Below, one piece after another: positions 1,821 to 44,761 of a stretch of 64,000 nt of DNA. The translations under genes were made by a program, and so were the position numbers. Source of the DNA: Macrostomum lignano. Its lineage: Eukaryota. The notes under the pieces were generated by a model that was not told the origin of the DNA, made no database searches, and was given only the letters and a program-made list of their open reading frames with translations. The stretch covers positions 62,001 through 126,000 of the forward strand of contig NIVC01002677.1 of assembly GCA_002269645.1 (NCBI GenBank), in the 5' to 3' direction. How positions within the stretch are numbered: the first letter of the stretch is position 1; each line of letters opens with the position of its first letter.

Positions 1821-3300
<1,480 letters not shown>

Positions 3301-4659
3301 AGATGAGGCACTTTGAAGGATACTTTTTAATTCTATACTATTCCCTTACCTAAGTTATATTTGCAGCATATCAGCATTTCACAAAAAGATGAGTAGTGGC
3401 GTAAAGGACAACTGTAGTATAACTGGACGGATAACTCAACGATCATGTGATTTTTTTGGAGGCCGATTTCCTGGGAAAATACACGGCGGATACAGGAAAG
3501 AATCGTTTTGTTTTTCATCACAACATCAATAACTGCATTTGATCTGGGCCAGTGAAGATTATCATTCTTTTTATTTACCGTACAATGGAATCTAACAGAC
3601 AGCTGATACTGAGTTGAGCAGTTTAAAAGTGCATCTGCAACAGGGTTTTCCTACCTACATCAAGATAGCTTTGAGACCCAATGATCCGGTTGTTTTCGAT
3701 GACTTTAATAAAGGAAACTTCAAATTCAGAGTTAGATAGACAGATAGATGGGTAGGTAGGCAGGCAGGTAGACAGATATTACTTCGAGTTAAAAGCTAAT
3801 AAAGTGCCAGCCGCAAGGAGCTGTCACTCACATCGCCAGCAGATGCTTCAACCTTCTTGAGCGCCCAGCCTCTCTCCCCCCCCCCCGTATATTGAACAGC
3901 GTCACCCGCTTCACTTCAAGCAGCCGCTTCCTGCTTCCCGCAGGCACAATGGCCGGCAGGAAATTGGCTTCGTGAATAGCGGCATCGGTCCCGAAGAAGC
4001 AGCGGCTCTATAAATTTGACTGATGGGACGATGAGCATTGTGGAGCATGCGAGAGCGGAAAAAACTTTCCAAAGGAAATTCTGTAACTAATATACTGCAG
4101 TCTATTTTTATCCTCAGAATCTATATTTAGCATCCAGTAGAAAATACATGTATACTCCGAAAAACTATGAGTTGCGCAGTCAAATATGGTGAGCGACCGG
4201 ATTAAACAAGCTGAGTCAGAGACCGGCTTTCTATGCGTCGAGATGTTTGCCTGTCAAAAATTGAAGCAGAAATCTGAGTTTGAAAAGGCTACTCTTTTAT
4301 CGAACTAGGAATTGGCGTCACACGACCCGGATAAGAATGCTCGCCTGATGAAGCCGAAACTCTGCTCAGGCTTTGGGTAGCTGCTGCATGGGGGTGGGAG
4401 AGGAAGTGCAGACCGCTGGTCGAGTTGGGAGTCGAAATTGGGATTTCTTAGAGATTGCCAATAGCGGAAGACGGGGAGCTGACCAAGTCCTGAGGTTCAA
4501 GAGTTTGAGCTGTGAGCTGTGTGGAACAGAAACTCAGCCATTAGATTTGATATTGCTTCTCTAATTGGAGATTGGAGAAAGTTTTTTGCTTTGATAAGCG
4601 ACTGGTATATGAGGTCGGAGACTCTAGACTGGAGATAAAGAGACAAGACATGAGGGGAG

Positions 4660-5465
4660 ATGAGCTGGGAAGAGAGGGAGATTGGGTTGAATGAGGGTGA
4701 CTGGGATGAAGAGGGGGGAGATTGGGGTGAAAAAGGGAGGGATTGGGTGAAGAGGAAGAGATTAGGTGAAGAGAAGGAGATTAGAGGGAAGAGGGAGATT
4801 GGGGTGACTAAGTGGAGATTGGGGTGAAGCGGGGGGAATCGGATTGAATAAAGGGAGATTGGAGTGAATAAGGGAAGATTGGGGTGAAGGGGGGGAGATT
4901 GGGTGAAGAGGGGAGATTGGAGTGAAAAGGGGAGATTGGGGTGAAGAGGGAGAGATTGGGTGAAGAGAAGGAGATTAGAGGGAAGAGGGAGATTGGGGTG
5001 ACTAAGTGGAGATTGGGGTGAATAAAAGGAGATTGGGGTGAAGAGGGGGAATCGGATTGAATAAAGGGAGATTGGAGTGAATAAGGGAAGATTGAGGTGA
5101 AGAGGGGGAGATTGTGGGTGAAGAGGTTAAGATTGGGGTGAAGGGGAGACATTGGGGTGAAGAGGGAGAGATTGGATTGAATAAAGGGAGATTGGGGTGA
5201 ATAAGGGGAGATTGGGGTGAATAAGGGGAGATTGGGGTGAATAAGGGGAGATTGGGGTGAATAAGGGGAGATTGGGGTGAAGAGGGAGAGATTGGATTGA
5301 ATAAAGGGAGATTGGGGTGAATAAGGGGAGATTGGGGTGAATAAGGGGAGATTGGGGTGAAGAGGGAAAGATTGGGGTGAAGAAGGGAAGATTAGGGTGA
5401 AGAGGGGGAGATTGAGGTGAAGAAGGGAAGATTGGGGTGAAGAGGGAAAGATTGGGGTGAAGGTT
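4660..5465. repeat. Purine/G-rich minisatellite (GGGAGATTGGGGTGAA-type, ~20-bp unit)
   Basis: Tandem units visible; strong purine strand bias. Confidence 0.9.
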
Positions 5466-6152
5466 AGCGGTGGTACGGAGGTCAGCCGGGACGTCAGTAG
5501 AAGACCTCAGGAACAGTCTAAGAGCTACCAGCTTAGCAGATATTTGGCCAACGCTCAAAGATGAGATTAAACGCTGCTTATCAAAAATACGGGCCGCCAT
5601 CTGTCGGGCTGATTCGGATTGAGACGAAAAATAATTCATATTCAGCTCACGGCAGTTTATTCAGATCAATATGGCGTAATTAAAATATAGGTATACTCAT
5701 TTCGATTGAATTTCGACAGCTTCGTCCCACGAGATTGCAAGATTTTAATCCCATTTGGTAGGTAGCAGCAGATAAATATGTGACTTCGAGCTGCGCGGAT
5801 AATCCCAGATATTACTCCCCATATTGCTCCCAATACTCTAAATATTCCTCTCAATATTACTTTAAATATTGCTCTCAATCTGAAAATCACTCTCAATCAG
5901 TCAGTGTTTCTGGAATGAGTAAAAAAATACACTTTTAAAACCTGAACGGACTGAGCTGCTCTACCATCATCCCCCAGATCCTTGGTAGCAACCTGAGAAA
6001 CAGATAAACAAAAATATGCGCGATATTTTAACCAAATTGCAATCATTTTAAACAAAAAGATCATACACTGAGTCGTGTTCAAACTGATAATGTAAAACTA
6101 TTCCCATTTGGATATGAAAGAACTGTCTGAGAACTGCAGCTCCTTCACTCTG

Positions 6153-6325: not shown

Positions 6326-6649
6326 ACTGGAAATTCGATTTCAATTCTCCAAATTTTCCAACTCAGAAGCCATGCGTGCGGGGTCGAGAATTCCTTGGGG
6401 GGGGGGAGGTAGAGAGCAGAGTTGCCTGTCACGATAGTGTGCTGGCTTGATTGCTGCATTAATATAGATAGGTCTGACTGGGGTGAGCAGGCTGGCTCCA
6501 GCCATAGCAGTTTCAGCAGGGAATCAGTGCTTTAGTGAGACAGACTTTCTACAGAGATTCAATATGGCTACGAGCTCAATAAATTCGTATAAAACTAGGA
6601 ATCGAATATCTTAGATTTGGAATTGGGAATGAGTGATATGTTTCCGGAT

Positions 6650-6900
6650 CTGGGGTTTTGGATCTGGGGTTTCGGGTCTGGGAGTTGGGACCTGGGATTG
6701 GGGACCTGGGATTTGGGATCTGGGAGTTAGGACCTGGGATTGGGGACCTGGGATTTGGGATCTGGGATTTGGGATCTGGGATTTGTGATTTGAGATTTCG
6801 GATTTGAGATTTCGGAACTGGGATTTCGGACCAGGGATGTGGGACCTGGGATCTGGGATCAGGGAGTTTGGATTTCAGATCTGGGATCCTAGATCTGGAT
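6650..6900. repeat. GGATCTGGG/GGATTTGGG-type degenerate repeat in the putative NPF1 5'UTR intron
   Basis: Directly visible. Confidence 0.8.
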
Positions 6901-7022
6901 CTTTAATTTCAACAAGTTTGAGTTGAGGTCTAATTGTCAATGTAATTTCTGACTGGTACACTTCACTAATGAGATTTAGCTTCAAGCACTTTCGTGCGCC
7001 TTTCTCAGAGCCACCGTCGAAG

Positions 7023-7725
7023 ATGCAGCATCTTGCCACTTGCGGCCGGCCATTGCTGGACAAGGGATCGCGGGGTTCAACGGTTCCGCCGAGGCAGCTG
7101 ACGCTGGCGCCGCTCGTGCTGGCGCTGCTGCTGGCGCTGCTGCTGGTGGCGCCGGCGCCCGCAGCCGCGTTCCGGGTGGCGGGCCTCTCCGACTCCGCCG
7201 CCATCGAGAAGCGGCAGCTGGTCAAGCCACAGATGCCGGAGCGGTTCAACTCGGAGGAGGAGCTCAAGATCTACATGCAGCAGCTGGAGGCCTACTACAA
7301 GCTGCTGGCCAGGCAGCGGTGAGTCAGGCAGTCAGTCAGTCAGTCAGTCAGTCAGTCAGTCAGTCAGTCAGTCAGTCAGTCAGTCAGTCAGTCAGTCAGT
7401 CAGTCAGTCAGTCAGTCAGTCAGTCAGTCAGTCAGTCAGTCAGTCAGTCAGTCAGTCAGTCAGTCAGTCAGTCAGTCAGTCAGTCAGTCAGTCAGTCAGT
7501 CAGTCAGTCAGTCAGTCAGTCAGGCAGTCAGTCAGTCATTCAGTCAGTCAGTCAGTCAGTCAGTCAGTCAGTCAGTCAGTCAGTCAGTCAGTCAGTCAGT
7601 CAGTCAGTCAGTCAGTCAGTCAGTCAGTCAGTCAGTCAGTCAGTCAGCCATTAAATTTCAGTTTCGGCAAGCGCTCTGACCCCGAAGTCTGGCAGGACGT
7701 TGACAGGGACGCCCTGTACTACTAA
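7023..7725 (+). CDS. NPF: Neuropeptide Y/F precursor 1 (2 coding exons: 7023-7318, 7662-7725)
   Basis: Hydrophobic signal segment, then KR, then QLVKPQMPERFNSEEELKIYMQQLEAYYKLLARQR. A GT donor at 7319 splits the Arg codon (CG|T) and the acceptor is TTTCAG|7662. Exon 2 reads F-G-K-R-SDPEVWQDVDRDALYY*. The predicted mature 36-mer has the NPY hallmarks P5, P8, Y20, L24, Y27, L30, R33, R35 and a GKR amidation signal. The phase-2 intron in Arg35 is the position known from NPY/NPF genes. Confidence 0.93.
7328..7646. repeat. (CAGT)n tetranucleotide microsatellite filling the NPF1 coding intron
   Basis: About 80 units, nearly pure. Confidence 0.97.
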
Positions 7726-8217
7726 GAGAGACTCGATTCCTCTTCTCAACTCTGTGCAAACTACTCTCAATAGTAGAAATTGAATGCTGCTATTCGAATT
7801 CCAGTTAACAGCAAAAATAAATGCCGCGAATCTGTCGCATATCGCGGTTGCTAATCGATTGATTAGCCGCTGCGGGCGGTTAAGAGACTAGAGCTTATCA
7901 ACTGCCGGTCTGTTTTCCTTTTGATGATTTATTTAGCCTTTAATTCGAGCCATTCAAGCTTGGTTGGTTGGTTGGTTGGTTGGATGGCCAACGCAAATGG
8001 ACACCGCCTGCAGACCTGCCGACCAAACTGCACAAGCCCATTTTAATTAGTTTCACGCTGTGATGGAAGCAAACAGTTAAAAATTAAAACACAAACGATT
8101 TACTGCCTACTTTTAGTATTATATTGGGCTAACCAATGATGAAAGTTAAGAAAAAATGATTAATACATGCAGCTGCTTTACACATGCTTGACCGACCGTT
8201 GCCAGATCTAACCAAGC

Positions 8218-8240
8218 TTGATTGATTGATTGATTGATTG

Positions 8241-8314
<74 letters not shown>

Positions 8315-8450
8315 CGATTGATTGATTGATTGATTGATTGAATGATTGATTGATTGATTGATTGATTGAATTATTGATTGATTGATTGATTGATTGATTT
8401 ATTGATTTATTTATTTATTTATTTATTGACTGATTGATTGATTGATTGAT
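8218..8450. repeat. (GATT)n microsatellite between the NPF paralogues
   Basis: Directly visible. Confidence 0.95.
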
Positions 8451-8824
8451 TTCGTCGTAGGAGACATCTCGCACACTCTTATCAAAGGTTGTCAATCAAT
8501 TCACTAGGAGGCTGTATTTATTGATGGGCTGCCATAGCAAAAGAATAAGAGTATATAATTAGTTCGTTCAACCAGGAGTCAGGTATTTCCTAATCTGGCA
8601 GCATTATCCACTGGACCAATCATCTATTCGATTGAATCCGAAAGGCAGAATACATAACCAGCAGAACAGTGCAGTCAGGGCTGCACAGGTGCCATTTGTG
8701 ACTGACAGAGCCGCTGAGCAATGGATGCTGGGCAATAAACAATGCAAGGCAGGTTGCTATTGGCGCGCCTTTGCCCCGCTCAAGCCGTGCGGAAACGCTC
8801 AACTCTCCGTTCGATCGATTTCAG

Positions 8825-9144
8825 ATTGGCTGCTGCTGCAAATCTCCCATCCCACTCCCTGATATCCCCTATTTTGGGCTTCTCACCGCATTTAGCTCCC
8901 CTCCCCGCGGGCCGCCCACCGCCTTGTTGTTTCGTCCCTTATAAATCCGACACGATCGAAGCCCGTCAGCCGTTGCCTGTCAGAACTGTTGAAACACAGC
9001 TAACCCTTCCGGACAAATATTGCTTGCTCTCGAGACAGCTGGCTGCCGTTCTAAGCAGTAGAAAAACAGGTAAAGCTGATGTTCACCTTCTCATATTATT
9101 TAAGTTTCCGGAAACCGAAACCGAAAATCGACCCCCCCCCGCAG
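8825..9144 (+). promoter_or_regulatory. Putative promoter, non-coding exon and 5'UTR intron of NPF2
   Basis: ATTGG at 8825-8829, TATAAAT at 8940-8946, donor CAG|GTAAAG at 9070, acceptor CCCCGCAG|9145 and ATG at 9157. Confidence 0.55.
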
Positions 9145-9156
9145 TGAGACTCCGTC

Positions 9157-9652
9157 ATGCCGATCAGCAGTACCATGAAGTCGACAGCGCCCGTCTGCCA
9201 CCCGCGCCTACTCGTGTGGGTCGCCTTCGCCGCCTTGGTGGCCGCCACCGCCTCCGCTGCCGCCGCCGCGACCGGCTCTGCCGACCTGCCCTTTGAAGTC
9301 GCCGACGCAGCCGGTGCCGCTTTTGAAAAGCGTCAGATCCAGCCGCCTGCTAAGCCGGACCGGTTCACCACCGTGGAGCAGTTTGACACCTACATGAAGC
9401 AGCTGGAGGCTTATCTAAAGCTTATCGGCCGGCAGAGGTGCGGCATAATTTATTGCACCTGCCTTATCTGATCTAATTAACCTCAGGTCCAGAGTATCAA
9501 TAATTGCTTGATAATTACAGCGCCCCAATCCAACCTCCCTTGACCGCCGCAGATTTGGCAAGCGCTCCGTCTGGCACCGCTACTCCCGACTGCGCAGGAA
9601 CCCCTGGTGGGTTCTGGGAGACTCCAGCTCGAGCGCTGACTACCTTGGATAG
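9157..9652 (+). CDS. NPF: Neuropeptide Y/F precursor 2, tandem paralogue (coding exons 9157-9437, 9553-9652)
   Basis: Signal peptide, KR, then QIQPPAKPDRFTTVEQFDTYMKQLEAYLKLIGRQR. The GT donor at 9438 splits AG|A and the acceptor is CCGCAG|9553. Exon 2 reads FGKR-SVWHRYSRLRRNPWWVLGDSSSSADYLG*. Same 36-aa length and intron phase as copy 1. Confidence 0.93.
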
Positions 9653-9917
9653 CCGGGAGTTGACTCAAGAAACTTTTCTGTCTCAAACAGCTCGGGACTC
9701 ACTTAATTATTAGCAGAATTCAATTTCAAACTGGCAGTTCAAAGCAAATAAATATTGGATGAGATTAATCTTCTGTCAGCGGCGCATTATTTGACTAGCT
9801 CACTGCAAACTGAAGATGTGTTCTGTCTTGTTTGTTACTACGGAATCGCATAAGGTCTCATGATGGAAGACGTGAAACTGAAATCTAAAGACTAAGTCTT
9901 TTTTCCATCTGACAAAG

Positions 9918-10698
9918 GATGAGACCGAGTTGAAATCTCACCCTGCAGGGGATGAGACCGAGTTGAAATCTCACCTGACAGGGGGTGAGACTGAATTGAA
10001 ATCTCACCTGCAGGGGGGTGCGACCGAGTTGAAATCTCACCTGATAGGGGGTGAGACTGAATTGAAATCTCACCCTGCAGGGGATGAGACCGAGTTGAAA
10101 TCTCACCTGATAGGGGGTGAGACTGAATTGAAATCTCACCTGACAGGGGATGAGACTGAATTGAAATCTCACCTGACAGGGGGTGAGACTGAATTGAAAT
10201 CTCACCTGCAGGGGGGTGCGACCGAGTTGAAATCTCACCTGATAGGGGGTGAGACTGAATTGAAATCTCACCTGCAGGGGGTGAGACTGAATTGAAATCT
10301 CACCTGCAGGGGATGAGACCGAGTTGAAATCTCACCTGACAGGGGGTGAGACCGATTTGAAATCTCACCTGACAGGGGTGAGACTGAATTGAAATCTCAC
10401 CTGCAGGGGAGTGAGACCGAGTTGAAATCTCACCTGACAGGGGGTGAGACCAAGTTGAAATCTCACCCTGCAGGGGGTGAGACTGAATTGAAATCTCACC
10501 CTGCAGGGGAGTGAGACCGAGTTTAAATCTCACCCTGCAGGGGGGTGAGACCGAGTTGAAATCTCACATGACAGGGGATGAGACTGAGTTGAAATCTCAC
10601 ATGACAGGGGATGAGACTGAGTTGAAATCTCACATGACAGGGGATGAGACCGAGTTTATTTATCCCCCTTACAGGGATGAGACCGGATTGAAATCTCA
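9918..10698. repeat. ~33-bp minisatellite GGTGAGACTGAATTGAAATCTCACCTG(A/C)(C)AGGG with internal dyad symmetry
   Basis: About 23 head-to-tail units with no unique spacers. Confidence 0.93.
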
Positions 10699-11417
10699 AT
10701 TGAATTTCATCGAATGCCCAAAGACTTAGAAGCTGTTCTCACATGATGACCTTCAAAGGTGATCTCAGCCGGCGCATAAGCCACCTGTTGAAACGCAATT
10801 TCAGAGAGCCACCACTGGGCTCAGAACGGGGGTGTGGCTGTAATTTTCAGCGCCTGTTTGTCGCCGGCAGCAGCCAAATTTGTCGGCAACTCTGCAGACT
10901 TGCCGACTGCGTCGCAAGCTCGCTGGAAACTTCCCGGATATTTTTTCACCACCGCTTAGATCCATTGTTCCTCTCAATAGGTTGTTTTTCATATATTTGC
11001 GCAGTCAATAGCCTGCCCTGGGTAATATCCGGCTCTGGGAACTGGAAAATTAAGCATTGTTAAGCGCTAACCAAAATGGCACGTTCTTCCCTATCCGGTC
11101 CCTGCTTCCCAGCTCCATTTGACCCCGTATGACTGCAGACTGTAGCGATCCAACATGCTAGAGGAAACTATTTGCACAGCCTTTATTCGATTTTTAAACT
11201 TGTGCATAAAACGTTGTTTCCCGCCGTGGGTGCTTGTAGTTGTTTACCATTAGGCATCCAGACTTGCAACTGTTCGTGTTTGGGGAAGGTGCAAGTAAAT
11301 GAATGAATGAAAGTTGCTTGTATTTTTACCATTCGAATATAAAAACAAATTGTATTGTTGCCTGCGCATTTAAATCATTGTGATTTCTATGCCAGTGCGC
11401 GCTTATTTAGCCCTCCC

Positions 11418-11452
<35 letters not shown>

Positions 11453-11594
11453 AAACAACAACAACAACAGCAACAACAAAAACAAAAACAACAACAACAG
11501 CAACAACAAAAACAACAACAACAACAATAGCAGGAACAACAACAACAACAACAACAACAGCAACAACAAAAACAACAACAACAACAATAGCAAG

Positions 11595-11628
<34 letters not shown>

Positions 11629-11800
11629 GCAACAACAAAAACAACAACAACAACAACAACAACAACAGCAACAACAAAAGCAACAACAACAACAACAGCA
11701 ACAACAAAAACAACAACAACAACAACAACAACAACAGCAACAACAAAAACAACAACAACAACAACAGCAACAACAAAAACAATAACAGCTACAAAAAACA
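11418..11800. repeat. (AAC)n trinucleotide microsatellite
   Basis: Directly visible. Confidence 0.97.
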
Positions 11801-14407
11801 AAAATAAAATACGCTGTCAGGGAGGCCGGATTTTTTGCTTTTACAGATTGAGAATTTGTCCAGAAAAAGTTTCTTAGAGACAAAGAAAGAGCATTTCGGA
11901 AAAAAAAGCTAGATAAGCTTGTAAGTGCATCTCGGACAAAACACCTACTTGCTTCATTTATTCGATTCAGAAGTTCGGAAGCTGAGATATAGCCAATTTA
12001 GTGATACGAGCGTAAAAATATAAAGCAAGATTGAGGCTAACCGAAGTCATCAATAAGGTGACTTCTGTCAAAGTCACATTCTACTCAAGGCCCGACTCTT
12101 GCCTATCCGATCCCACTCCATCCGTTCACTGGATTGCCTACTCAATGACAAGAGGTTCATAGTGTCTACTCAAGCTCAAGCAAGCCCACTTCTTACTCCT
12201 GCTTTTCCTCATGCTAGCCGCGAGAGGATTTCAGCAGCAGCTGTCAAGACAATTGCTGAGAAAAATGAATGAAGTCAGAGATGCCTCACTGACTAGCCGT
12301 GAACGAGCGCTTTGTTTCGGCGAGGTCTTCAGTTTAACAAGCGCAGCAGGATGTGCCTTGTGCATGAAAGATGAAGTATTTCTACGCTTTTACGAACAAA
12401 TGCATTGAGAAGCGACAGGTGCTGTGTTTGCGAGGTCGACAGACGTACAGGCATTCAACATATAGTACCGGTATGGGATACAGCAGGGACGCTAAAACTT
12501 CACGGTTCTTCAAAATTCGTGTGTTAAAATTTTCAGAAAAGTACACGTCCATAAGCCACATAAGCCAAGACTTACTTAGGCCGATTAAATGCTTATCTTT
12601 TTCATATGCATGAAACGAATTAGCGTATGTAATTACCTGATTTTATGCTCAGTTGAATTTGTAATCGTACAAATTATTCCAAAATATTTCATTATTTCAT
12701 CATTTTCCTTTTGTGTTCTCTCTTTTGGTCTAAATCCGCTTCAAAAGAAGTCGCGATAAAACTTCACGGGAGCTTGACGAGGGCTTACAGGGGGAATTGC
12801 TGAGATTCCAAGGCTTATAGGGGACTGCTGAGATGTCAAGACTGTCAAGACAGGTCAGAAGCTACATGCTTACCAAACTTAAAAATTTCCCTTTGATTTT
12901 TTTCCCTGAAAAGAGATTACTTATCGATGATTGCAGCGTTAGTAGAGAAAAAAATGGTGGAGGCTGAAACCGTCAGGCGACCGATAACTTTGGAAGAGCT
13001 GTTGGATCTATTCGATGAGCTCTTCAGCCCGTGTGTCAGCAAAGTTTTCAAATGCAGTCTGAGCCAGTTGACCCGACCGCTAGAACGTGCAATTTCAAAA
13101 CGCAAAAAATGGATCAAAACAGTATTGTCCTGGGATGCAATCACTCACGAATGCGAGAGCGGCTGCTATGAGAACCGTCTCTTACGTGGTCCACTTTCGA
13201 CCCCTCGGGGCAAAGGAAGGCGACTCCCAACTGAGAGCAAATGGACCACACCTCCGTTACCAGGGAATCTTCCCCAAGCATCCACAGTTCGTCCGCCTCA
13301 AGGACCACTAGGAACACTTCGTTATATAAGGACGTAACACTCTCGATTCGTGTAAAAATAGTTGAAGGCCGATTTTCGTTCTGGTATACATTAGTGAGAT
13401 AGATGAATTGGATGATTTTCAACATATATGTGCTGTTTGCAGAAGCCTAAGGGCTATTACTTTCCAAAATTTTGCAGTATGTAACCAGAAGCTCTTAGCT
13501 AAATTATATTTTTGTTGTATAGTCCTATTACGAGCTATTAGGTTATTTACCGTTTTGTACATTACTTATGACTAGGCTATATAGGCCTATGCTATGACTA
13601 AGGACATGTTTATCGACTGGGAACCTTGTAATAAATAATTTATAGGCCTAGACCTATCTGATTTCTGGCTAGTCATAACCCTAACTGCCTTAACTAACTA
13701 ACTTCATTAGTTCAGAAGTGTTCCTAGTGCTCCTTGATTAAACTACATGTACATGTACATTTAGCTCGTGGTCGACTCACGCCTGTCGACTGTCAGTCTC
13801 TCGGTGCTTAATGTACACTGCTTTTATCGATTCCTCAGCGCCCCTCGCTTGGCTGAAACAGAATGTACATCGTCTTAATACTTTTACAAACACAAAATTT
13901 TAGTGGCAATTGTTCATAACAAATTTCCCGATGCTTGCATTGTTATACTGATTCTCATGGTTCTGAAACTATGACTGTTTTGAATCTGAACTCAAGCGTC
14001 TCGTAAGATTCTGCAGCACATGCTAATGTAATCATAACTTAATCATAACAATAGCTAGTTCATTGAAATAGAAAATATCTATTGAAAAGGGAATGCTTCA
14101 GGATGACTAATGCATTATTAGCAAAAAAATCACAGAAAATCCGTTAAAGAAGCAAAATACTCATATTTAGATACCAAACGACTCACACATATTCTTTTCG
14201 GTGCATATTTTGTTTAAAGTGTCCCCGCCTCAGCAACTTGATGCGTGCGATTTTAATTTTAAGGAAAACTGGAGTTTTTCCAAGGTAATTTATCAACGCT
14301 ATCCTTGCGAATGCGATAAAATATTTTTGGATAGCGCAAACCGTAGCAAAGGCGATACCCAAATTTTATCATTTTTCAGTCACAACTTACTTGCAAAAGT
14401 TTTCGTA

Positions 14408-17400
14408 ATGAAAATTTACACTTGGGAGTCTCTCAAAGAGTTTCAACAGAGGGACTGTAAGCAAAAATTAATTGTTATTGAGGGAAAAGTGTATGATGTA
14501 ACTAAATTTATGCACAAGCACCCAGGTGGAGCAAAACTTTTAGGAGCCTATGCCGGAGAAGATGCAACTGTAAGTTTATCTAATAAAAAATGTCAATACC
14601 ATGTTCAATAAACTATAGTCTAAGTCTAGCTATTTGCATGTACTCTGTACTGTAAGCTGTAGGCCTAATCTGTTATCATTTATGCAGTGGCCTCAGCTGG
14701 CCTAAGCCTATTTTAGCTATATCTTTTTGCTTTGTTTCTAAGATTTTTGGACTTATTATATTGATTTTGAAGAGGCTTAACATAGCTTGTAATCCATCAA
14801 TTTTTTTCTAGATATACACCTTTATAGGGCTAGTCTACATTTAAATTACATTCAAGTGTGACTTAATTTGTCTAAAAATTTAAATAGGGGGCCTAATATC
14901 TAAAATTAACTCACTCAAAGAGCGTTGTAGCTCAGCTTTATTTATATCTGACATGCTTAGCCTATACATCCTTGTTTAAGAAAGTTTTTTTATTATTTCT
15001 ATAGAATAGAGATCTTTTATATCTATATTATTAGATCTTATGTATAATTGTTTAGGTTCTAAATTCTAACAATAGTACTCATAATTTTTAAGACAAAAAA
15101 GTAATAAAAAAAATTTTATATGTCTATAATTATGTTAAATTATTAGACCAAGGATGAGGTGTAAAAAGTAGGAATTAAAACTCTTTGGGCCTTCCCACTG
15201 TAGAAATAATCTAGGTAACAATAAAATTAAGAGACTTACTTCTAATAATCTTGTAATTAGCCTTTTAGCTATCTTTAAAACCTTTTAAAATTCCTGTGGT
15301 GCTGTTACTTTAGTTGAACTAATATAAGGTTTTATTTTTTAGTATAATACTTCTTGACTAAACTAAGCAATTTATTTCAACCTTTCTTTGAATGTTCATA
15401 AAGCAGAATTATTTACATTAAATAATTGCCATTATAATTTTCTTTTTCATCATAGGATGCATGGGTTGCTCTGCACAATGACAAAGAGCTTGTGGAGAAG
15501 TACATGAAGCCATTGCAATGTGGAATTGTTGAAGATTATGAGAAACATGTGGTAAGCTATTCAATTCCATTTTCTAAATGTAACTCTTACTTTAATCTTA
15601 ATTGCATATGTGAAAATTGAAAACAATGTTTAATTTAATAATCAAATGCTGACCTTTGAGATCAGACTCGAACTCAATATTAAACTGTTTATCCTACTAC
15701 TAATTAGTGCTTGTCAGTAGGCAGTATTGAACATCTATGCATCTAATTTATCAATGTCGGTATTTCAGTCGCCCAGCCAGGCGGATTTCCGACGCCTACG
15801 CCAGCTGGCCGAGTCGTCCGGCTGGTTCCGCGCCCGGCCGCTGTTCTTCATCAAGTACCTGCTCCAGTGCTGGGCATTCGAGTTGGCCGCTGTGCTGCTG
15901 CTATGGCAGTTCGGCCTGCACATCTGGACTGTACTGCCAGCGGCCCTGCTGCTGTGCACCGCCCAGGCTCAGGCCGGCTGGGCTCAGCACGACTACGGCC
16001 ATCTGAGCGTCTTCAACAGCCGCCGGCTGAATCATATTGGCCACGAGCTCGTTGTCGGGCACATGAAGGGAGCCAGCTCGCACTGGTGGAATTTTCGGTA
16101 CAGTTTTTGTTATTGGTTTAAATGCGCTGTTTTTCTACTATCAGTAGTGTTAATCAGGTTTTTGTCTACCAAAAGAGGATAAAAGTAAACTAAAACAGTT
16201 ATATCCTTACTTTCAGTAGCAGTATAAGAATAAAGTGATAAAAATGGTTTTATTTTACTCTTACTAGCAGTTAACAAATAATTAATTTCGGTCTTCAGAC
16301 ACTTTCTGCACCACTCCAAGCCGAATGTAGTTGGCGCCGACCCGGACATCAATGTGCCGTATCTGTTCTTGCTTGGCGACAAGATGCCGCAGGAATGGGG
16401 CAAGCGCAGACGCGGTTTCATGCCCTACAACTGGCAGCACGATTACTTCTGGCTGCTTGGGCCGCCAATGCTGCTGCCGCTGTACTTTCACTACGAGAAT
16501 ATCTACTTCATCTTCAAGCGAGGCGACTGGCGCGATTTTGTCTGGACGCTGTCGTTCTTTTTGAAATTTTTCTACGTTTTTAATCATTTCTTTCCGTCCT
16601 GGCTTGCCACGTTTGGATTCTACATGCTTGTGCGGTGAGTGCTTATTGCGGTTTATGGCAGTTGTGAGGCTTTAAATGGGCCACCATAAACGTAAAGGGC
16701 TGACATTAAAAGATTGTCTTTAAAGGAAGTCGAACAATAAAGGCACCGAAGTGAGTCAAATAGACATCAGGGGCGCCAAATGGAGATTAGGGGCGCCAAA
16801 GAGACTTCAGGGGCGCTAAATGGACACCATAGGCGCCAAATAGACTTCAGTGGTGCCAAACAGACATCAGTGGCGCCAAACAGACATCAGTGGCGCCAAA
16901 CAGACATCAGTGGCGCCAAATGGAGATTAGGGGCGCCAAAGAGACTTCAGAGGCGCCAAATGGACATCAGTGGCGCTAAATAGACATCAGTGGCGCTAAA
17001 TAGACTTCAGTGGCACCAAACAGACATCAGTGGCGCTAAATAGACTTCAGTGGCGCCAAATAGACATCAGGGGCACCAAACAGACATCAGTGGCGCTAAA
17101 TAGACATCAGTGGCGCCAAATAGACTTCAGTGGCGCCAAACAGACATCAGTGGCGCCAAACAGACATCAGGGGCACAAAACAGACGTCAGTGGCGCTAAA
17201 TAGACATCAGTGGCACCAAACAGACATCAGTGGCGCCAAATAGACATCAGTGGCGCCAAATGGACATCAGGGCGCAAACAGACGTCAGTGGCGCTAAATA
17301 GACATCAGTGGCGCCAAACAGACATCAGTGGCACAAAACAGACGTCAGTGGCGCTAAATAGACATCAGTGGCACCAAACAGACATCAGTGGCGCCAAATA

Positions 17401-18631
17401 GACATCAGTGGCGCCAAATGGACATCAGTGGCGCAAACAGACATCAGTGGCGCCAAACAGACATCAGTGGCACAAAACAGACGTCAGTGGCGCTAAATAG
17501 ACATCGGGGGCAACAAACAGATATCAGTGGCGCCAAACAGACATCAGTGGCGCAACCAGACGTCAGTGACGCTAAATGGAGATTAGGGGCACCAAAAGAG
17601 ACACCAGGGGCGCCAAATGGACATCACTTTGCTTTATCTATAGGTTACTGTAATTATAATTATACTGTACTAATAGATATCCTGTAATTATGAAACGGAC
17701 TCCTGCAGTTACCTGGAGTCGCACTGGTTCGTGGCCTGCACCCAGATGAGCCACATTCCCATGGACATCGACCGCGACCAACGGCGCGAGTGGCTGCCGA
17801 TGCAGCTGAAGGCCACCATGAATGCCGAAGGCGGCTCATTTAACGACTGGTTCACCGGCCATCTCAACTACCAGATTGAGCACCAGTGAGTTGCTGCAAC
17901 CGGGTTCTTACATCTAGTTTCTCCACTTAACGTTGTCTTGTTAGTGCGCGTTGGTCCGGGTTACTTATTGAAGCCTCCCAGATGCTCGGGCTTGACCGCC
18001 CGCCACCTCCACAGATCCTCAGTTGCTGAGCCAGCCTCCCAGATCCTCAGTTGCTTGGGCAGCCTCCCAGATCCTCAGTTGCTGGGGCAGCCTCCCAGAT
18101 CCTCAGCTGCTAGGGCAGCCTCCCAGATCCTCAGTTGCTGGGCCAGCCTCCCAGATCCTCAGCTGCTGAGCCAGCCTCCCAGATCCTCAGCTGCTGGGGC
18201 AGCCTCCCAGATCCTCAGCTGCTGGGGCAGCCTCCCAGATCCTCAGCTGCTGGGCCAGCCTCCCAGATCCTCAGCTGCTGGGCCAGCCTCCCAGATCCTC
18301 AGCTGCTGGGCCAGCCTCCCAGAATGTCAGTTGCTGAGCCAGCCTCCCAGATCATAACTCACAGGGTCAATATTGTTTCATATTTTGGCTCAGACATTCA
18401 ACAGTATAGTTGTGCTCACTTTCGACCCCCCTCCCCACCGCGCCGAGCAGCCTGTTCCCCACCATGCCGCGCCACTCCTACCCGCTGGTGCAGCCGCACG
18501 TGAAGCAGCTGTGCGCCAGGCACGGCATCCCCTATGTGGAGAAGCCGCTGTCGACCGCCCTAGCGGACATCATCAGGTCGTTGAAGAAGTCCGGCGAGCT
18601 CTGGCTTGAAGCCTACCAAATGCCCGGCTGA
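14408..18631 (+). CDS. FADS2: Front-end (delta-5/delta-6 type) fatty acid desaturase with N-terminal cytochrome b5 domain; exons 14408-14569, 15456-15551, 15769-16097, 16299-16634, 17709-17885, 18451-18631 (~426 aa)
   Basis: HPGG heme motif in exon 1, His boxes HDYGH, HFLHH and QIEHH, and C-terminal LFPTMPRH. All introns are GT-AG with consistent phases, and the exon sum is divisible by 3. Delta-5 versus delta-6 specificity cannot be read from sequence, so the symbol is family-level. Confidence 0.95.
16758..17626. repeat. 20-bp minisatellite (CAGACATCAGTGGCGCCAAA) in FADS intron 4
   Basis: About 40 units visible. Confidence 0.95.
17970..18355. repeat. 27-bp minisatellite (GGGCAGCCTCCCAGATCCTCAGCTGCT) in FADS intron 5
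   Basis: Directly visible. Confidence 0.95.
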
Positions 18632-19616
18632 GGTTCGCCTGTTGAATATTTTTGCATTCTTTCTCTTAACTTAAACTAACTGATATTTCGAGCGTAGCTA
18701 CTAAAAGTCTTATAACGCTATACTACTGCCAAGCAAAGCTAAAATAGATTTTTATAAATCTGTCGCGACTTGTCTACTCTCTCAATTTGCTCTGTTTTCT
18801 TATTCTTAGTTGAGTTTTGTTACTATCGGAAATATTTGCTCTTTTAAGCTCAAAACTTTTATACTTTGTGTCATTTTCCTGTGTAATAATTTTAGTGAAG
18901 TATTTGCACAGCTGCTCTACTGCAAGTAGCAATATAGGCAAATATTTACCCAGTGCGAATTTCTAAGACTAAGACACAGCAATACTCTGTTTTCAGATTT
19001 CACTTTTAACGCAGGAGTTTAATATGGACCAACCAATGCATACAACTCTTTTTGCAATGATTCAAATTGCAACCTAACCCATGTCTATTGTTTTTTAATG
19101 AGACACTAAGCACATGCCTCTTAGCACAGCTTCAATCTTTTCTTATCGTTGCTTATAAGAATGTTACCGAATTCAGGTCTCGATTCGATTTATTAATTTG
19201 TTTAATTGGTACGGTCAGGTCGAATGAATTGGGTTATTGTAATCAATGATTAGCATAACTATAATATCAAACAAAATTGGTGAATAACACGAGAAACATT
19301 TTTGCATAGAGTTTTTGGGAGAATACATGTACATGTACAATAACCATAATAACTGATAAGAATAATTTACTATACAATTAGCAAACTGGCTTCAGGTGAA
19401 AACTAAATTCGTAAAAGTAAAGTTCGGCTTGGTAAATAAAGCGATAGCAATTAGAATAAACAAATTAATGGAAACTTCTTTTTTAGACAAAAATACCGCT
19501 AATAATTGCATTATTGACATTCTTATTAGGTAGTTCAAATAACTTAATAAATTTTTAAGCATAAGCCCAGGTGTGATACTATTTATAGGTCTCAATTCTA
19601 TAACCAGTAAACTTCG

Positions 19617-19896
19617 CTCATTGGCTAGCGGCTTTGCCCCACCCCACGCCAGCAATAAAACCAGCTAAAAGGCCGTCCTCACCCAACGCACTCATTGGCT
19701 AGCGGCTTTGCCCCACCCCACGCCAGCAATAAAACCAGCTAAAAGGCCGTCCTCACCCAACGCACTCATTGGCTAGCGGCTTTGCCCCACCCCACGCCAG
19801 CAATAAAATCAGCTAAAAGGCCATCCTCACCCAACGCACTCATTGGCTAGCGGCTTTGCCCCACCCCACGCTAGCAATAAAACCAGCTAAAAGGCT
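19617..19896. repeat. 74-bp tandem repeat, ~3.8 copies
   Basis: CTCATTGGCT recurs at 19617, 19691, 19765 and 19839. Confidence 0.95.
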
Positions 19897-20066
19897 CGTC
19901 TTCTCAACCAATACGAGTAAGTTTATATCTTTCTACATTCATTATACACACTTGGTTCAGAAGTATCGCCCGCCGTTGCCCCACTGCACTTTTCCCGCGA
20001 GAGATCTGCCCGCCGAGCAAATGCCCGTTTCCCCGTTTTTAACGATCCGGTACAATGCTCAGTGCT

Positions 20067-20143
20067 CAGTGGCGGTGGCGGATCCAGATTTTTTCAAGGA
20101 AGGTCAGTCAGCCGACCCCCTTGACCCCTTGGATCCACCAGTG
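20067..20143. mobile_element. Miniature hAT-like remnant
   Basis: Imperfect terminal inverted repeats CAGTGGCGG(TGGCGG)ATCCAG ... TTGGATCCACCAGTG. Confidence 0.35.
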
Positions 20144-20318
20144 CTTGTGCTCCTAAATTCAATTCATTTTTCAATACAAAGGCACATTGGTTTGGTTTCA
20201 AGGACCAGTAGTCTTTGAGCTTTGGGTTTCGGGCTTTTGGGAGTTTGGCCTTTTTAATACAATACCCAGGTCCCCAAGATCCAAACCGAAGCCCCCTTTA
20301 TGCCAAGATCTTTACTAC

Positions 20319-23300
20319 TCAGACTCGCTCTTCGGCAGACTTGCCACCCAGCTCAAAGTCGTCGTCGCCGCCGCCCTGGTGGCCAAGCAGCGGCATGCTC
20401 TCGCGGCGCGGATTGCGCACCGTAGTGGCCAGAACGCTCGCCCTCATGGCCGCCACCTCCATCGAGGTCAGCGAGTCTGACGATGGCGACACGGCCAGAG
20501 CGGCGGCAGCGGCGGCGGCAGCACCAGACCCCCCAACGCTGCCGCTCTTGTCCAGCAAGTCACTGCCAGAAGCCGACTTCTTCGGCGCAGCAGCTGAAGC
20601 AGCCGCAGCCGTAGCAGCTGCCTTGGCTGTAGACTTTTTCTTGCCGACATTGCGCAGCTGCAGGAAGTCGAGGGTATTCACGATCTCCTTGCCGGTGCCC
20701 TGCAGCCGGCGCAGCAGGTGCTTGTGCAGGTGGGCTTCGACCTCCTCAGCCGACGTGAAATTGTCGTGCGCGTGCACCTGGCTGAAGTCGAAGGCTCTCA
20801 GCAGCAGAGACACCTGCTGTTCAACTGGCTCGCCATTGTCTGTGAGGCCCGGCGGGAACAGGCTGTCCTCGGCGCCGCCCAGCTTCACCGACGCCTTCAG
20901 GTTGGAGTTGAGAATGTCAGACAGGGGCAGGTCGGCCCGGTCCTTGCCCAGCGGGTTCAGCAGCATGATGCCGATCTTGAACCAGCCTGCCGGAGTGGGC
21001 GGTGACTGGGTCGGTGAGTAACTCCTCAATTGGTTTATTTGTTTCCAGTACCATTCTTTTTAACCGCTAGAGTTGCAGCATCCGAATTTTCGAAATCCCC
21101 ATATTTAAACGCACTGAATTTCTACAATTCATACTCTTATCTCGATCTCTTTTCTCCCTAGAACAGGGATCGCCAAACCCTGGCCCGCAGGCCGCATGTG
21201 CCCTGCAAAGCCTCTCTATCCTCTCTAATCTCTATCTCAATCCTATAAAAGGGCCTGTCAACTTAAGCTCACAAAGTGGAGCCCGAGTAACCTATGTACA
21301 CAAATGATACGTCATTCTGCTGACAGTGACACCAGGAAGCTGGGTTTGGCAAAAAATTAGACTTGGGATGATAGGGAATAACAAGCAAGGGCATAATTAT
21401 CGACTCTACTTTATAAGCTTAAGTTGGCAGGCCTTTACAAAAGTAATCCGGACTGCTTAATGTTTTTCTTTTCTCAGCTCTCTTTTTTTCTCTCTCCCCT
21501 CTTCTCAACTCTCTTCTCTCTTCTCACCCTCTTCTTTCCCCTCATCTGACCCGTAGCCATGAGCTAGATTATTTATCTGACCCCTGAAGTAACCAAGTTT
21601 GCTGACCCTTCTCTAGATCCTAAACACTTAATCCCTGATTGAACTTGTTGACCCGTATTGTACCACTTTTTCAAACTGTTTCAAAAAGACGCAAGCTATT
21701 GCTTTGAAAAAACCTCACCCAGGTAGAAAATGAACTCAAGCGAGCCGAGAATGGGAAAGTACGCCAGCAGCTCAACGCCCAGCACGGTGTCAATCACTGA
21801 AGACTGGGTCTCGTTGATGGACTCGGCAGCTGGGGCCATCGTTACCTGACGCACCATCTCCGGTCGGATCAACTGGGTTGACAGCAGGGTGGAGAACAGG
21901 AACAGGTACACAGCGGCCACCGCAACCTGGGTGTACACCAGCGGCACATTGAACTCGGTGTAGGACCACACGGTTCCCAGGTCGCCTCTGAACTTGTTGA
22001 TCATCTCCACTAAGAACAGCAGCTCACGCTCCTCAGCGATTAGGCCTTCAAAAGTTTTTTTGCGTATTGGTTGGATTTAAGATTCTTAACTGACAAGCAA
22101 CCGTGTTGCCTTGAAGGTTGGCCCTCATAAGCGAATTCGAAACAAATATGTGCCCTTTACACATAAATTTCAGTAGACTTAGAGATTAGAATGAAATTGT
22201 TCTAAGCACATTTTGTTGCACTCGCAATGAACATTCATGTACCATAAATAGTACTTGAACGAGTAGTCTTGCAGGTATATATTTTCATTCATTGTGCCTC
22301 CATATAAATGCCTGTAAGTACTTTAGGCAAAATGTGTTTGCTTAGAGAAAATTCAGTATGAGTACGAGTATGTTGAGTCTTAAGAGAAATATATTACTTT
22401 ATGCTACCCCTCTTTTATCTCTGTATCCTCCAGACACTCCGGTTGAATATTATAAATTGTGTAAATAAATTCTAATAACCTTATCAGCTATCAGTAATTG
22501 AGCGCTTCGTTTTTATGGCTTAAATGATTTATTATGATAATTGGGAGCGTTTTATTGCCCCAACAAGGATAAGAACTCAAATAAACTCCGAACTCCAGCA
22601 ACCCCTAAACTCCAACGAACCTTCGAAATACAACAAACCCCTTAAAATCCAACAACCCCCAAACTCCAACAACCCCTAAACTCAAACAACCCCTAAACTC
22701 AAACAACCCCTAAACTCAAACAACCCCTAAACTCCAAAAGCCCCCAAAATCCAACAAACCCCAAACTCCAACACCCCCCTAAACTCCAAAAACCCCCAAA
22801 ATCCAACAAACCCCCCAAATTCAACAAACCCCCAAAATCCAACAACCCCTAAACTCAAACAATCCCCAATACCCAAAATCCAATAACCCCAAAACTCCAA
22901 CAACCCCCAAAATCCAACGAACCCTAAACTCTAAAAAAGTCACAACAGAAACCCTGCAAAGCTCAAGATGACTGTTGAATAAAAGCATGCATTCCCAGAA
23001 ATAGGTTTCAACCATCCCCAGTCGCTCACCCAACATCCTAGACCGCTTAATGAGCCGGGTAGCCCAGGCGAGGGGCAGCCAGTACTCCGGACTGTAGGTG
23101 AGATCAGTGCTCTGCGACAGCTCGGCCGACCTGGCAAAAGTTTCAACTTCCTCAGCGGTCACCAATCGACCAAAATGTTTCTGCACCTTCTCGTCCAAAT
23201 TGATGAGGTCCAGCCTCTCGCGCCAGGTGAGCTCAAACTCGGGCTTCTTGCTATTCTTATTGCCGTCAGTGGAATCGTTGTCGGTCCCGGCTGTCGCAGC

Positions 23301-24277
23301 AGCTGTCGTGCCGGCGGAACGGTCCTGACTGCTCTTCTTGGCCTTGAGCGGCTGGTTAAAGCCAAACCGGTCCTTGATTTGCTGCGATATTGTGGCCATC
23401 ATCAGGATCCAGGATAGATTAGAATAGCGCAGTATTGTTATGCGAATTTTTCTTGCAATATCGCTTTTCACCGGATGGGTGCTCTCGACTAGGGCCTGAG
23501 TGTAGAACGACATGCTGCTGAGCCAGGGGATGGCCATGCACGTGCTCCACCAGCTGCGCGGTCATGTTGTAGCGGGGTGAAGTTGCTTTGTGAATTAAAT
23601 ACAGCTGGGTCGAACCAGGCAATGATAAGTGTATTAAACTTAAAGCACAATGGAAGCAGCTTGAGCACTGATAAACCAGTTGGAGTGTCAAAGAGGTAAT
23701 GGGCGCTGAGAAAGCAATGAGGAAGGCTGAGATGATTGATGAAGCAGTTGGAGCACCGAAAGGAAGCAGTGGAGGCTGGAGCACCAAAAGGAAACAGTGG
23801 AGCGCAGAGGAAGCAGTGGAGGCTCAGAGGAGCAAGAGTTTTAGTAAAAAAAGTTTGAAGAAAATCGGTTGAGCCGTTCGGGAGAAAATCAATTACAAGC
23901 AAGCAACCAAGCATTTCATTTTTAGTATATTGGATGATGCAATAGTTAAAAATAGAACTGCTTGGCTTATACCAGTAACTGCGTTTTCTTACTTACCGAC
24001 TAAACACGGTCGACACGAAGAAGCCCAGCATAAATGAGAGCGGCACAGAGGTGCGAATTTTGCTCAGCCAGCGCACTACAGCCTCGAATGTGATCATCCG
24101 ATGTTCGTGATTAGCCAAGGCCTGGTGATAAATCACAGCCAAAATGACGTAGGCCGTAACAAAGAAAATGTAGTCGACCCAGAGCATCTCCCATACGCTG
24201 CCAGTCCATCGGAATAGCAGCTTCAGGAAGAACAGTCGATCTTTCGTGTAGATCTTTGACGCGTAGCTGACAACCAT
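20319..24277 (-). CDS. BEST: Bestrophin family anion channel; exons 24277-23997, 23553-23030, 22045-21719, 20986-20319 (599 aa)
   Basis: Motifs MVVSY..KLLFRWTGS, VPLSFMLGFFVSTVFSRWW, YWLPLAW, VPLVYTQV and FYLGWFK..LLNPLG. Splice sites are GT-AG and the exon total is 1800 nt. Confidence 0.93.
22590..22935. repeat. C/A-rich degenerate minisatellite (AAACTCCAACAACCCCT) in bestrophin intron 2
   Basis: Directly visible. Confidence 0.88.
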
Positions 24278-44193: not shown

Positions 44194-44761
44194 TATAATG
44201 CTCTGAATAAATAGATAATCATTATTTATAATATTGACTTTTTTAATTTTGACTATAACAAAGATTACATCATAACTACCTTTTTGTTTATCATTAGTAA
44301 CAAGTTGATTGGCTAAATTGTAACTTTTACTTTTATTTGAATTGCATAATCACTATAGTCACAAGATTTTCCTTGGTATATGGCAGTAAAATATGAGCCA
44401 CACCTATATTGGATCCTAAAAGATATAAACCTATATTTTAAGTCAAATAGAATTAAAATTTTGTATACCAGTATGAGTTTAAATCTATGATTGGCTATCA
44501 TTTTAGACATTATTTATACAATTACTATATTATTATTATCCATTAATGTAATTTAAATAATAAAAATGTTTCGATTTCGACAGTGCATAAAGCATAAGGT
44601 TTAATTATAAGCTAACAAATAATGACTGCATTTTTGTGAAGCCATGATTTAATCTAGTAATACATAAAAAATGAATGACCTTTCCATTGATTATATTTTT
44701 CGGCTTGATCAGATAGTTTTTTATTTATTTCATGGCATCCCACTTTGCTGCATCCCACCAG

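Follow-up and report, generated by a model that had tools for sequence, protein, structure and literature searches.

Introduction

Can a flatworm carry true members of the NPY/NPF neuropeptide family whose amidated end holds Gln34, as in vertebrates, in place of Pro34, and, if so, was this state retained from a common ancestor or acquired anew? The question is raised by a stretch of 64,000 nucleotides of the Macrostomum lignano genome (assembly GCA_002269645.1, contig NIVC01002677.1, positions 62,001 to 126,000 of the forward strand; hereafter the window), in which a first-pass annotation had proposed a tandem pair of NPF genes, here called gene 1 and gene 2, at positions 7023-9652. NPY/NPF signalling controls feeding, planarian npy-8 controls sexual maturation (PMC2953531), and M. 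lignano serves as a transgenic flatworm model in studies of the germline and of regeneration. The analysis presented here indicates with high confidence that the pair represents two expressed, tandemly duplicated NPF (NPY/NPF-family) prepropeptide genes belonging to a Gln34 subfamily.

Two tandem genes of the NPY/NPF family

Positions are those of the 64-kb window, on the + strand unless stated, and splices were rebuilt from the window sequence. Both genes have two coding exons, and the proposed interval begins precisely at the ATG of gene 1 and closes with the stop codon of gene 2. Splice reconstruction and translation yield products of 119 aa for gene 1 and 126 aa for gene 2, each composed of a hydrophobic region, a short spacer ending in Glu-Lys-Arg, 36 residues, Gly-Lys-Arg and a C-terminal peptide. 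The 36-mers, QLVKPQMPERFNSEEELKIYMQQLEAYYKLLARQRF (gene 1) and QIQPPAKPDRFTTVEQFDTYMKQLEAYLKLIGRQRF (gene 2), are the very strings given in the first-pass annotation; both extend from Gln1 to Arg-Gln-Arg-Phe36 and fill the interval from KR to GKR with exactly 36 residues, of which 19 are identical between them.

Against Pfam PF00159 (Hormone_3), whose gathering cut-off is 28.7 bits, gene 1 scores 40.3 bits (E 3.3e-10) and gene 2 scores 43.6 bits (E 3e-11). A profile of the two peptides, run against PDB, places residues 4-36 on residues 4-36 of PYY/NPY, gap-free, and also finds the Moniezia NPF. The gapless match to vertebrate NPY noted in the first pass at P5, P8, Y20, L24, Y27, L30, R33, Q34 and R35 is borne out, and E15 joins these positions as common to both 36-mers and vertebrate NPY/PYY. 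At position 31, gene 1 has Leu where gene 2 has Ile, which fits the Ile/Leu31 listed among the family criteria beside a length of 36-40 residues, N-terminal prolines and conserved Tyr20, Leu24 and Tyr27 (PMC7314547).

A phase-2 intron within the Arg35 codon is a conserved NPY/NPF signature from vertebrates to flatworms (PMC7314547, PMC2953531), first described in the Moniezia expansa gene (Mair et al. 2000, cited in PMC2953531 and PMC7314547), and it is present in gene 1 and gene 2 alike. RQRF-GKR is encoded across the splice junction in both genes; the amidation itself is predicted from the motif. A second intron, described only as 'typical' of the family (PMC7314547), is not present past Phe36-GKR, where the C-terminal peptide and the stop share the same exon in both genes. 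The Pro34 of canonical protostome NPFs, for which an RPRF-amide end is 'typical' (PMC7314547, PMC6389622), is replaced in both genes by Gln34, with the codon CAG. Since high profile scores and a family-specific intron position and phase occur in each gene independently, the resemblance to NPY/NPF is far beyond chance. Gene 1 and gene 2 are bona fide NPY/NPF-family members, new to the described family, with a lineage-restricted Gln34 variant. An sNPF/PrRP-type identity was considered and rejected on account of the single 36-residue peptide per precursor and the phase-2 intron at Arg35, as that class is marked by short peptides, often several per precursor, or by a phase-1 intron in an N-terminal or central position (PMC7314547).

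Both genes are already public (GenBank, UniProt, Pfam Hormone_3), as hypothetical or misnamed proteins. The best database matches of both are M. lignano proteins: gene 1 is 99% identical to GenBank BOX15_Mlig011275g2, with the same junction, and gene 2 is 96% identical to a UniRef M. lignano entry. Older UniProt models of these loci are frame-shifted or truncated, and automatic naming has labelled them misleadingly ('Gastrin domain-containing', 'Secreted RxLR effector peptide protein', 'GLUCAGON domain-containing'). A further contig, NIVC01003022.1 (GCA_002269645.1, Mlig_3_7), matches the window collinearly (97-99% identity) and has the same tandem pair annotated, as 'hypothetical proteins' of 119 aa and 126 aa, both with Pfam Hormone_3 and with splice junctions as predicted here. 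The differences between the two contigs lie mostly in microsatellite length, while the peptide-coding parts are identical: gene 1 exon 2 is 100% identical to its copy (excerpt positions 10748-10811), as is gene 2 exon 1 to its own (excerpt positions 13621-13901). The gene 1 intron measures 451 nt there against 343 nt here (+108 nt, 27 units) with unchanged junctions, and the intergenic (TTGA)n tract is ~1 kb longer. The annotated gene 2 coding sequence spans 496 nt for 126 aa, that is 281+115+100, so its intron is the same in NIVC01003022.1. A full-text search found no paper mentioning gene 1, gene 2 or RQRFamide peptides; McVeigh et al. 2009 (PMC2749192) and Koziol et al. 2016 lay outside that search, and an earlier description is possible.

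The GenBank annotation was built from an RNA-seq-guided transcriptome assembly (PMC5730564), which lends the predicted junctions indirect support at the transcript level. For the gene 2 peptide with its Gly, AlphaFold modelling (15 aligned sequences) gave a predicted local distance difference test (pLDDT) value of 86.6 and a DSSP helix exactly at 14-31; the best Foldseek matches of the model are NPY 7x9a_P and PP 7x9c_P (receptor-bound) and the avian-PP miniprotein 5wlb_C, at template-modelling (TM) scores of 0.70-0.75. The hydrophobic moment over residues 14-31 is 0.37-0.45, against 0.43 in human NPY, and the helix is equally amphipathic. The gene 2 peptide is thus predicted to adopt a PP-fold, with a proline-rich N-terminus packed on a helix at ~14-31.

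Several points weigh against reading the pair as expressed NPF genes with the products described. The evidence for expression is indirect, as it comes from the stated method of the public annotation and not from reads. The signal-peptide cleavage sites of both genes were judged by eye, the hydrophobic core of gene 1 is preceded by an unusually long charged stretch of 25 residues, and an in-frame ATG at 6969 lies upstream of the gene 1 start. The Foldseek E-values exceed 1 and are non-significant for a model of 37 residues, the chains being so short. Cleavage, amidation and pyroglutamate formation are read from motifs only, and the receptor action of M. lignano NPFs is a prediction.

Distribution of Gln34

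How common Gln34 might already be among the NPFs of this lineage was a point on which the first-pass annotation had made its novelty depend. An exhaustive HMMER search with the two-peptide profile hidden Markov model against 1.84 billion representative proteins (library clustered at 50% identity, E <= 1e-3) was relied on here, because word-indexed homologue searches returned only M. lignano self-matches and frame-shifted old models and missed even Mlig023721. The exhaustive search gave 62 matches, all with the NPF/NPY precursor motif; those source-checked are NPF/NPY family entries, and no other Macrostomum species is among them. The RQRF-GKR end occurs in only 4 of the 62 clusters, all from M. 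lignano: gene 1, gene 2, Mlig023721 (peptide QLEPPVKPEHFKSIEEFKLYMKELEAYLKLLGRQRF) and Mlig010426 (peptide QFQLALKTPRFNSAKQLHAYIRQLEVYMKLLGRQRF). All four precursors have KR before Gln1 and a 36-residue peptide.

The remaining matches have Pro34, apart from a few with RGRY, RSRF or KPRF, and the Pro34 matches whose source was checked or is evident include krill, shrimp, moth, molluscs and planarian NPY-1. Pro34 is also found in 11 of 11 Schmidtea NPY-family precursors of the published planarian set, and the protostome NPFs tabulated in a 2019 review, including those of a cestode, a schistosome and a land planarian, end in RPRF-amide, in a table where amphioxus has RQRY-amide, like vertebrates (PMC6389622 supplement). 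Among the data reached (62 clusters, 11 planarian NPYs and the review table), Gln34 was not seen in any other protostome. Within M. lignano it is common: of the 5 single-peptide NPF genes found, 4 carry it. The krill precursors (Meganyctiphanes norvegica), with three tandem RPRF-amide copies, came third in the profile search because their helix motif, QLEAFYAIAGRPRF, resembles the QLEAY core.

M. lignano also keeps three Pro34 genes of the same Pfam family, Mlig009644, Mlig009822 and Mlig007142. The first encodes a single RPRF peptide and has the canonical Arg35 intron, at the same position as in the window genes (22.5 kb in one copy of the genome, excerpt positions 8327-30876, and 15.7 kb in a second, excerpt positions 8327-24012), but differs from them in Pro34 and in having no dibasic site, hence no KR, before the peptide. 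Mlig009822 (3 peptide copies) and Mlig007142 (2 copies) are, like the window pair, arranged in tandem, on NIVC01000624.1 (excerpt positions 1-421 and 8001-8426), and differ as multi-copy RPRF precursors whose RPRF motifs are not interrupted by an intron. In Mlig007142 an 'intron' of 99 nt is annotated that takes out precisely one repeat of the peptide; it may reflect an alternative isoform or an artefact of annotation, and a 141-aa form with three copies also exists.

The two paralogues outside the window, Mlig023721 and Mlig010426, resemble gene 1 and gene 2 in the spacer, KR, the Gln1...RQRF 36-mer, GKR, the Arg35 phase-2 intron and a desaturase neighbour. Mlig023721 is identical to each window gene at 23 of 36 positions and Mlig010426 at 18 of 36. 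Unlike the window pair, they are single genes, and their signal, spacer and C-terminal peptides are unrelated; Mlig010426 moreover is without Pro5 and Pro8, has Pro9 instead, and carries a net charge of +6.

Better-known systems share parts of this design. The NPYs of Schmidtea mediterranea (Collins et al. 2010, PMC2953531) likewise belong to an expanded NPY/NPF family with the Arg35 intron; NPY-1 has the PPAKP-x-F motif of gene 2 and a pyroglutamyl N-terminus detected by mass spectrometry (PMC2953531), and an N-terminal spacer that closes with KR or KKR occurs in NPY-3, -4, -8 and -10. The extra propeptide before KR that the first-pass annotation had singled out is therefore present but not new. 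The planarian peptides differ in that all 11 have Pro34 (RPRF, RPRY, RPRL), in the cut of NPY-1 at an internal KK and in their lengths, which start from 29 aa. The NPFs of Moniezia expansa, Arthurdendyus triangulatus and Schistosoma mansoni/japonicum share with the window peptides amidation (36-39 residues), the Y..L..Y core and an Arg-X-Arg-Phe end (PMC6389622 supplement), whereas these classical flatworm NPFs end in GRPRF-amide and have N-termini other than Gln. Vertebrate NPY/PYY and the amphioxus peptide have 36 residues aligning gap-free over 4-36, Gln34, the GKR site, the same intron position and the PP-fold; they differ in ending in Tyr36-amide and in starting with a Tyr1 that follows the signal peptide immediately, without spacer or pyroglutamate, and identity is only ~30%.

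Origin of the Gln34 subfamily

The four Gln34 peptides are each other's closest relatives, with 16-23 of 36 positions identical. RPRF peptides share at most 19 of 36 with gene 1, gene 2 and Mlig023721, and the RPRF peptide of Mlig009644, from the same species, shares 10-15 of 36 with the Gln34 peptides. Nonsynonymous divergence (dN) is 0.25-0.42 within the group versus 0.64-0.83 to Mlig009644; the groupings use dN and identity only, as synonymous divergence (dS) over 43 codons is near saturation and noisy (0.5 to infinity). The group further shares KR-Gln1, Tyr20-Met/Ile21, Leu24-Glu25, Lys29-Leu30 and the RQRF end, and the Arg35 phase-2 intron is common to all four genes and Mlig009644. By identity and dN the Gln34 genes are thus mutual nearest relatives, as expected of the distinct subfamily that had been proposed. 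Ordering the duplications by dS was tried and dropped, the codons being too few and too saturated.

The subfamily had been described as locally duplicated. The tandem copy stands, whereas the two-gene extent does not: at least four genes are found at three loci. Each of these loci adjoins a paralogue of a fatty-acid desaturase gene. Beside Mlig023721 the desaturase lies 10 kb downstream (excerpt 20226-21109) and its exons are 83% identical in nucleotides to the window desaturase, while beside Mlig010426 it lies 4 kb upstream on the opposite strand (excerpt 2717-6045, -) with 71-78% nucleotide identity; one desaturase is thus inverted relative to npf. The presence of a desaturase paralogue at each locus points to growth of the subfamily through duplication of an npf-desaturase block, together with one tandem duplication at the window locus. 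A six-frame scan found no further NPF-like exon pair in the 64-kb window, nor in the sequences of NIVC01003022.1 and of the Mlig023721 locus.

In the three genes checked, Gln34 is encoded by CAG, which a single transversion separates from CCG. Judging from the sequence comparison, the subfamily, with its at least four genes at three loci, most likely goes back to a single CCG-to-CAG change. It has been tempting to call the RQRF end 'vertebrate-type', and Macrostomum could in principle have retained Gln34 as the ancestral bilaterian state. Macrostomorpha branch early within rhabditophoran flatworms, which counts in favour of such retention, as does the Gln34 of chordates, including the RQRY-amide of amphioxus (PMC6389622 supplement). 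Retention is nevertheless very improbable, as all other protostome matches have Pro34, rarely Gly or Ser, and the planarian, cestode, schistosome and land-planarian peptides have Pro34; M. lignano itself keeps an RPRF gene with the same intron; the CAG of the genes examined is one transversion away from CCG; and the four genes form one similarity group, which speaks for a single origin in the lineage. The residue is therefore present as noted in the first pass, but not as a retained vertebrate-type feature: it is most simply derived, converging on the chordate state, and the Gln34 common to vertebrate and M. lignano peptides is most likely convergent.

The claim that the duplication is old and under selection agrees with the divergence of the pair. 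Gene 1 and gene 2 differ at ~52% of synonymous sites, dN/dS is ~0.34 over 43 codons, and the signal, spacer and C-terminal parts are unalignable, a pattern that fits a duplication of long standing in which the mature peptide has been under purifying selection. It is hardly credible that either copy, or both, should be a decaying duplicate or one that is not expressed. The DV1 genome is highly redundant and repeat-rich (PMC5730564) and the gene 1 intron is nearly all microsatellite, as might be expected of decay, and yet no damage is seen in the frames, splice sites, dibasic sites or Gly, a dN/dS of ~0.3 accompanies the ~52% synonymous difference, both genes stand in a transcript-derived GenBank annotation, and the peptide-coding parts are identical in the second assembly copy while the microsatellites differ.

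Predicted processing and receptor action

Along the standard prohormone pathway, the signal peptide would be removed in the endoplasmic reticulum, a PC2-type convertase would cut after both dibasic sites and a carboxypeptidase would trim Lys-Arg. Peptidylglycine alpha-amidating monooxygenase would then use the Gly to form Phe36-amide, and the exposed Gln1 would cyclise to pyroglutamate. The expected products would be the pyroglutamyl, amidated (-NH2) forms of QLVKPQMPERFNSEEELKIYMQQLEAYYKLLARQRF for gene 1, with a monoisotopic mass of 4498.33, and of QIQPPAKPDRFTTVEQFDTYMKQLEAYLKLIGRQRF for gene 2, with 4337.28; the [M+H]+ values computed for these 36-mers are 4499.34 and 4338.29, respectively. 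Full-length peptides are expected because neither 36-mer has an internal dibasic pair.

The mature products could also differ from these 36-mers, being N-terminally extended through disuse of KR or lacking pyroglutamate, a variant that appears rather unlikely. It draws on the fact that processing is deduced from motifs, on planarian NPY-1, which is cut at an internal KK and has several alternative forms by mass spectrometry (PMC2953531), and on RLRR in the gene 2 C-terminal peptide, a further possible cleavage site. Opposed to it are the lack of any dibasic pair inside the two 36-mers, their length, which at 36 residues is the exact family norm, and the KR-Gln1 junction, which is kept in all four paralogues although the spacers before it are unalignable. 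Conservation of KR-Gln amid unrelated spacers argues that the site is used.

Both 36-mers are predicted to adopt a PP-fold and to activate class A G-protein-coupled receptors of the NPY/NPF type via the C-terminal Arg-X-Arg-Phe-amide. The vertebrate Y2 receptor does not tolerate Pro34, and [Gln34]PP gains Y2 agonism, so that the pharmacology quoted in the first-pass annotation is correct (PMC3563083). By analogy, a shift in receptor preference through Gln34 is plausible in M. lignano, and the separate receptor suggested in the first pass is purely conjectural. It is intriguing to hypothesize a convergent selectivity switch at position 34, in which Gln34 and Pro34 peptides would address different NPY/NPF receptor paralogues; such a switch, if true, would mirror the vertebrate pairing of Y2, which needs Gln34 and rejects Pro34, with PP/Y4, and would be a convergent instance, open to experiment in a flatworm amenable to transgenesis, of ligands and receptors diversifying together. 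On present evidence this full switch seems unlikely.

A competing possibility, to which slightly less than an even chance may be given, is that Gln34 is functionally neutral: RQRF- and RPRF-amides would share the NPF receptor or receptors, and the four genes would differ mainly in place or time of expression, as proposed for the 11 planarian npy genes. Neutrality would agree with the expansion to 11 planarian paralogues that all have Pro34, so that expansion needs no ligand switch. Drosophila, in addition, has RVRF. The family motif RXRF/Y-amide (PMC6389622) tolerates other residues at X, and RGRY and RSRF are among the matches. Less easily explained by neutrality are the invariance of Gln34 in four paralogues though 36-56% of the other peptide positions differ, and the standing of position 34 as a proven selectivity determinant in vertebrates (PMC3563083).

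The family picture itself is unchanged by a Gln34 subfamily, as the RXRF/Y-amide motif already allows Gln34. The presence of Gln34 in most single-peptide M. lignano NPF genes corrects the database names ('RxLR effector', 'Gastrin domain', 'GLUCAGON domain') and can guide the design of peptides and antisera, since anti-RPRF-amide reagents may miss RQRF peptides. For receptor deorphanisation, M. lignano offers a natural Pro34/Gln34 contrast.

Gene structure and neighbourhood

The features of the locus are collected in Table 1. The separate AATAAA of each gene, together with TATAAA ahead of gene 2, suggests two independent transcription units.

Table 1. Features of the peptide-gene locus and of the remaining window (window coordinates)
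Feature	Position	Strand	Details
14-bp tandem repeat (x17)	6646-6888		immediately upstream of gene 1
Gene 1 signal region	~7023-7169	+	judged by eye; hydrophobic core LAPLVLALLLALLLVAPAPAAA (by eye), preceded by a long charged stretch
Gene 1 coding exon 1	7023..7318	+	ATG at 7023; ends CAG CG|GTGAGT; Met1-Gln98 and two bases of Arg35 codon
Gene 1 spacer	7170-7214	+	FRVAGLSDSAAIE-KR; limits judged by eye
Gene 1 mature-peptide residues 1-34	from 7215	+	CAG = Gln1
Gene 1 intron	7319..7661	+	343 nt, GT..AG, phase 2 within Arg35 codon (CG|T); unique parts only the GTGAGT donor and the final ~14 nt ahead of the acceptor
(AGTC)n microsatellite	7322-7647		81.5 units; fills nearly all of gene 1 intron
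Gene 1 coding exon 2	7662..7725	+	begins cag|T TTC GGC AAG CGC with third Arg35 base; stop TAA
Gene 1 Phe36	7663-7665	+
Gene 1 Gly-Lys-Arg	7666-7674	+	followed by C-terminal peptide SDPEVWQDVDRDALYY
Gene 1 likely poly(A) signal AATAAA	7816..7821	+	91 nt past stop; pattern only, putative function
(TTGA)n tract	8218-8451		between gene 1 and gene 2
Gene 2 possible core promoter TATAAA	8940..8945	+	217 nt upstream of ATG; pattern only, putative
Gene 2 possible 5'-untranslated-region intron	9070..9144	+	75 nt, GT..AG; pattern only, putative
Gene 2 signal region	~9157-9270	+	by eye; hydrophobic core LLVWVAFAALVAATASAAAAA (by eye)
Gene 2 coding exon 1	9157..9437	+	ATG at 9157; ends CAG AG|GTGCGG; Met1-Gln93 and two bases of Arg35 codon
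Gene 2 acidic spacer	9271-9333	+	TGSADLPFEVADAAGAAFE-KR; limits judged by eye
Gene 2 mature-peptide residues 1-34	from 9334	+	CAG = Gln1
Gene 2 intron	9438..9552	+	115 nt, GT..AG, phase 2 within Arg35 codon (AG|A)
Gene 2 coding exon 2	9553..9652	+	begins cag|A TTT GGC AAG CGC with third Arg35 base; stop TAG
Gene 2 Phe36	9554-9556	+
Gene 2 Gly-Lys-Arg	9557-9565	+	followed by C-terminal peptide SVWHRYSRLRRNPWWVLGDSSSSADYLG
Gene 2 likely poly(A) signal AATAAA	9747..9752	+	95 nt past stop; pattern only
33-bp tandem repeat (x24)	9909-10698		starts 257 nt past gene 2 stop
Fatty-acid desaturase exons	14469..18631	+	Pfam FA_desaturase fragment 15727-16179; separate from peptide genes
Bestrophin exons	20322-23537	-	Pfam 41.6 bits; unrelated to peptide genes
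Ig-domain exon	33834-38501 (with the upstream open reading frame)	-	unrelated to peptide genes
MON1/FUZ longin-domain gene	44671-45891	+	107.8 bits; unrelated to peptide genes

The upstream ATG of gene 1 (6969-7022, 54 nt before the annotated start) would add MRFSFKHFRAPFSEPPSK to the protein. Its Kozak context is weak, and the stretch separating the two ATGs contains an acceptor-like ctttctcag; the choice of start depends on the transcript 5' end or on trans-splicing.

Between 6500 and 10000 no credible gene was found on the opposite strand or in other frames, the open reading frames there being antisense, low-complexity or repeat read-through, and an Rfam scan of the window gave no matches. 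Upstream of the Ig-domain exon, an open reading frame at 37782-38501 has no Pfam match and appears leucine-rich-repeat-like by eye.

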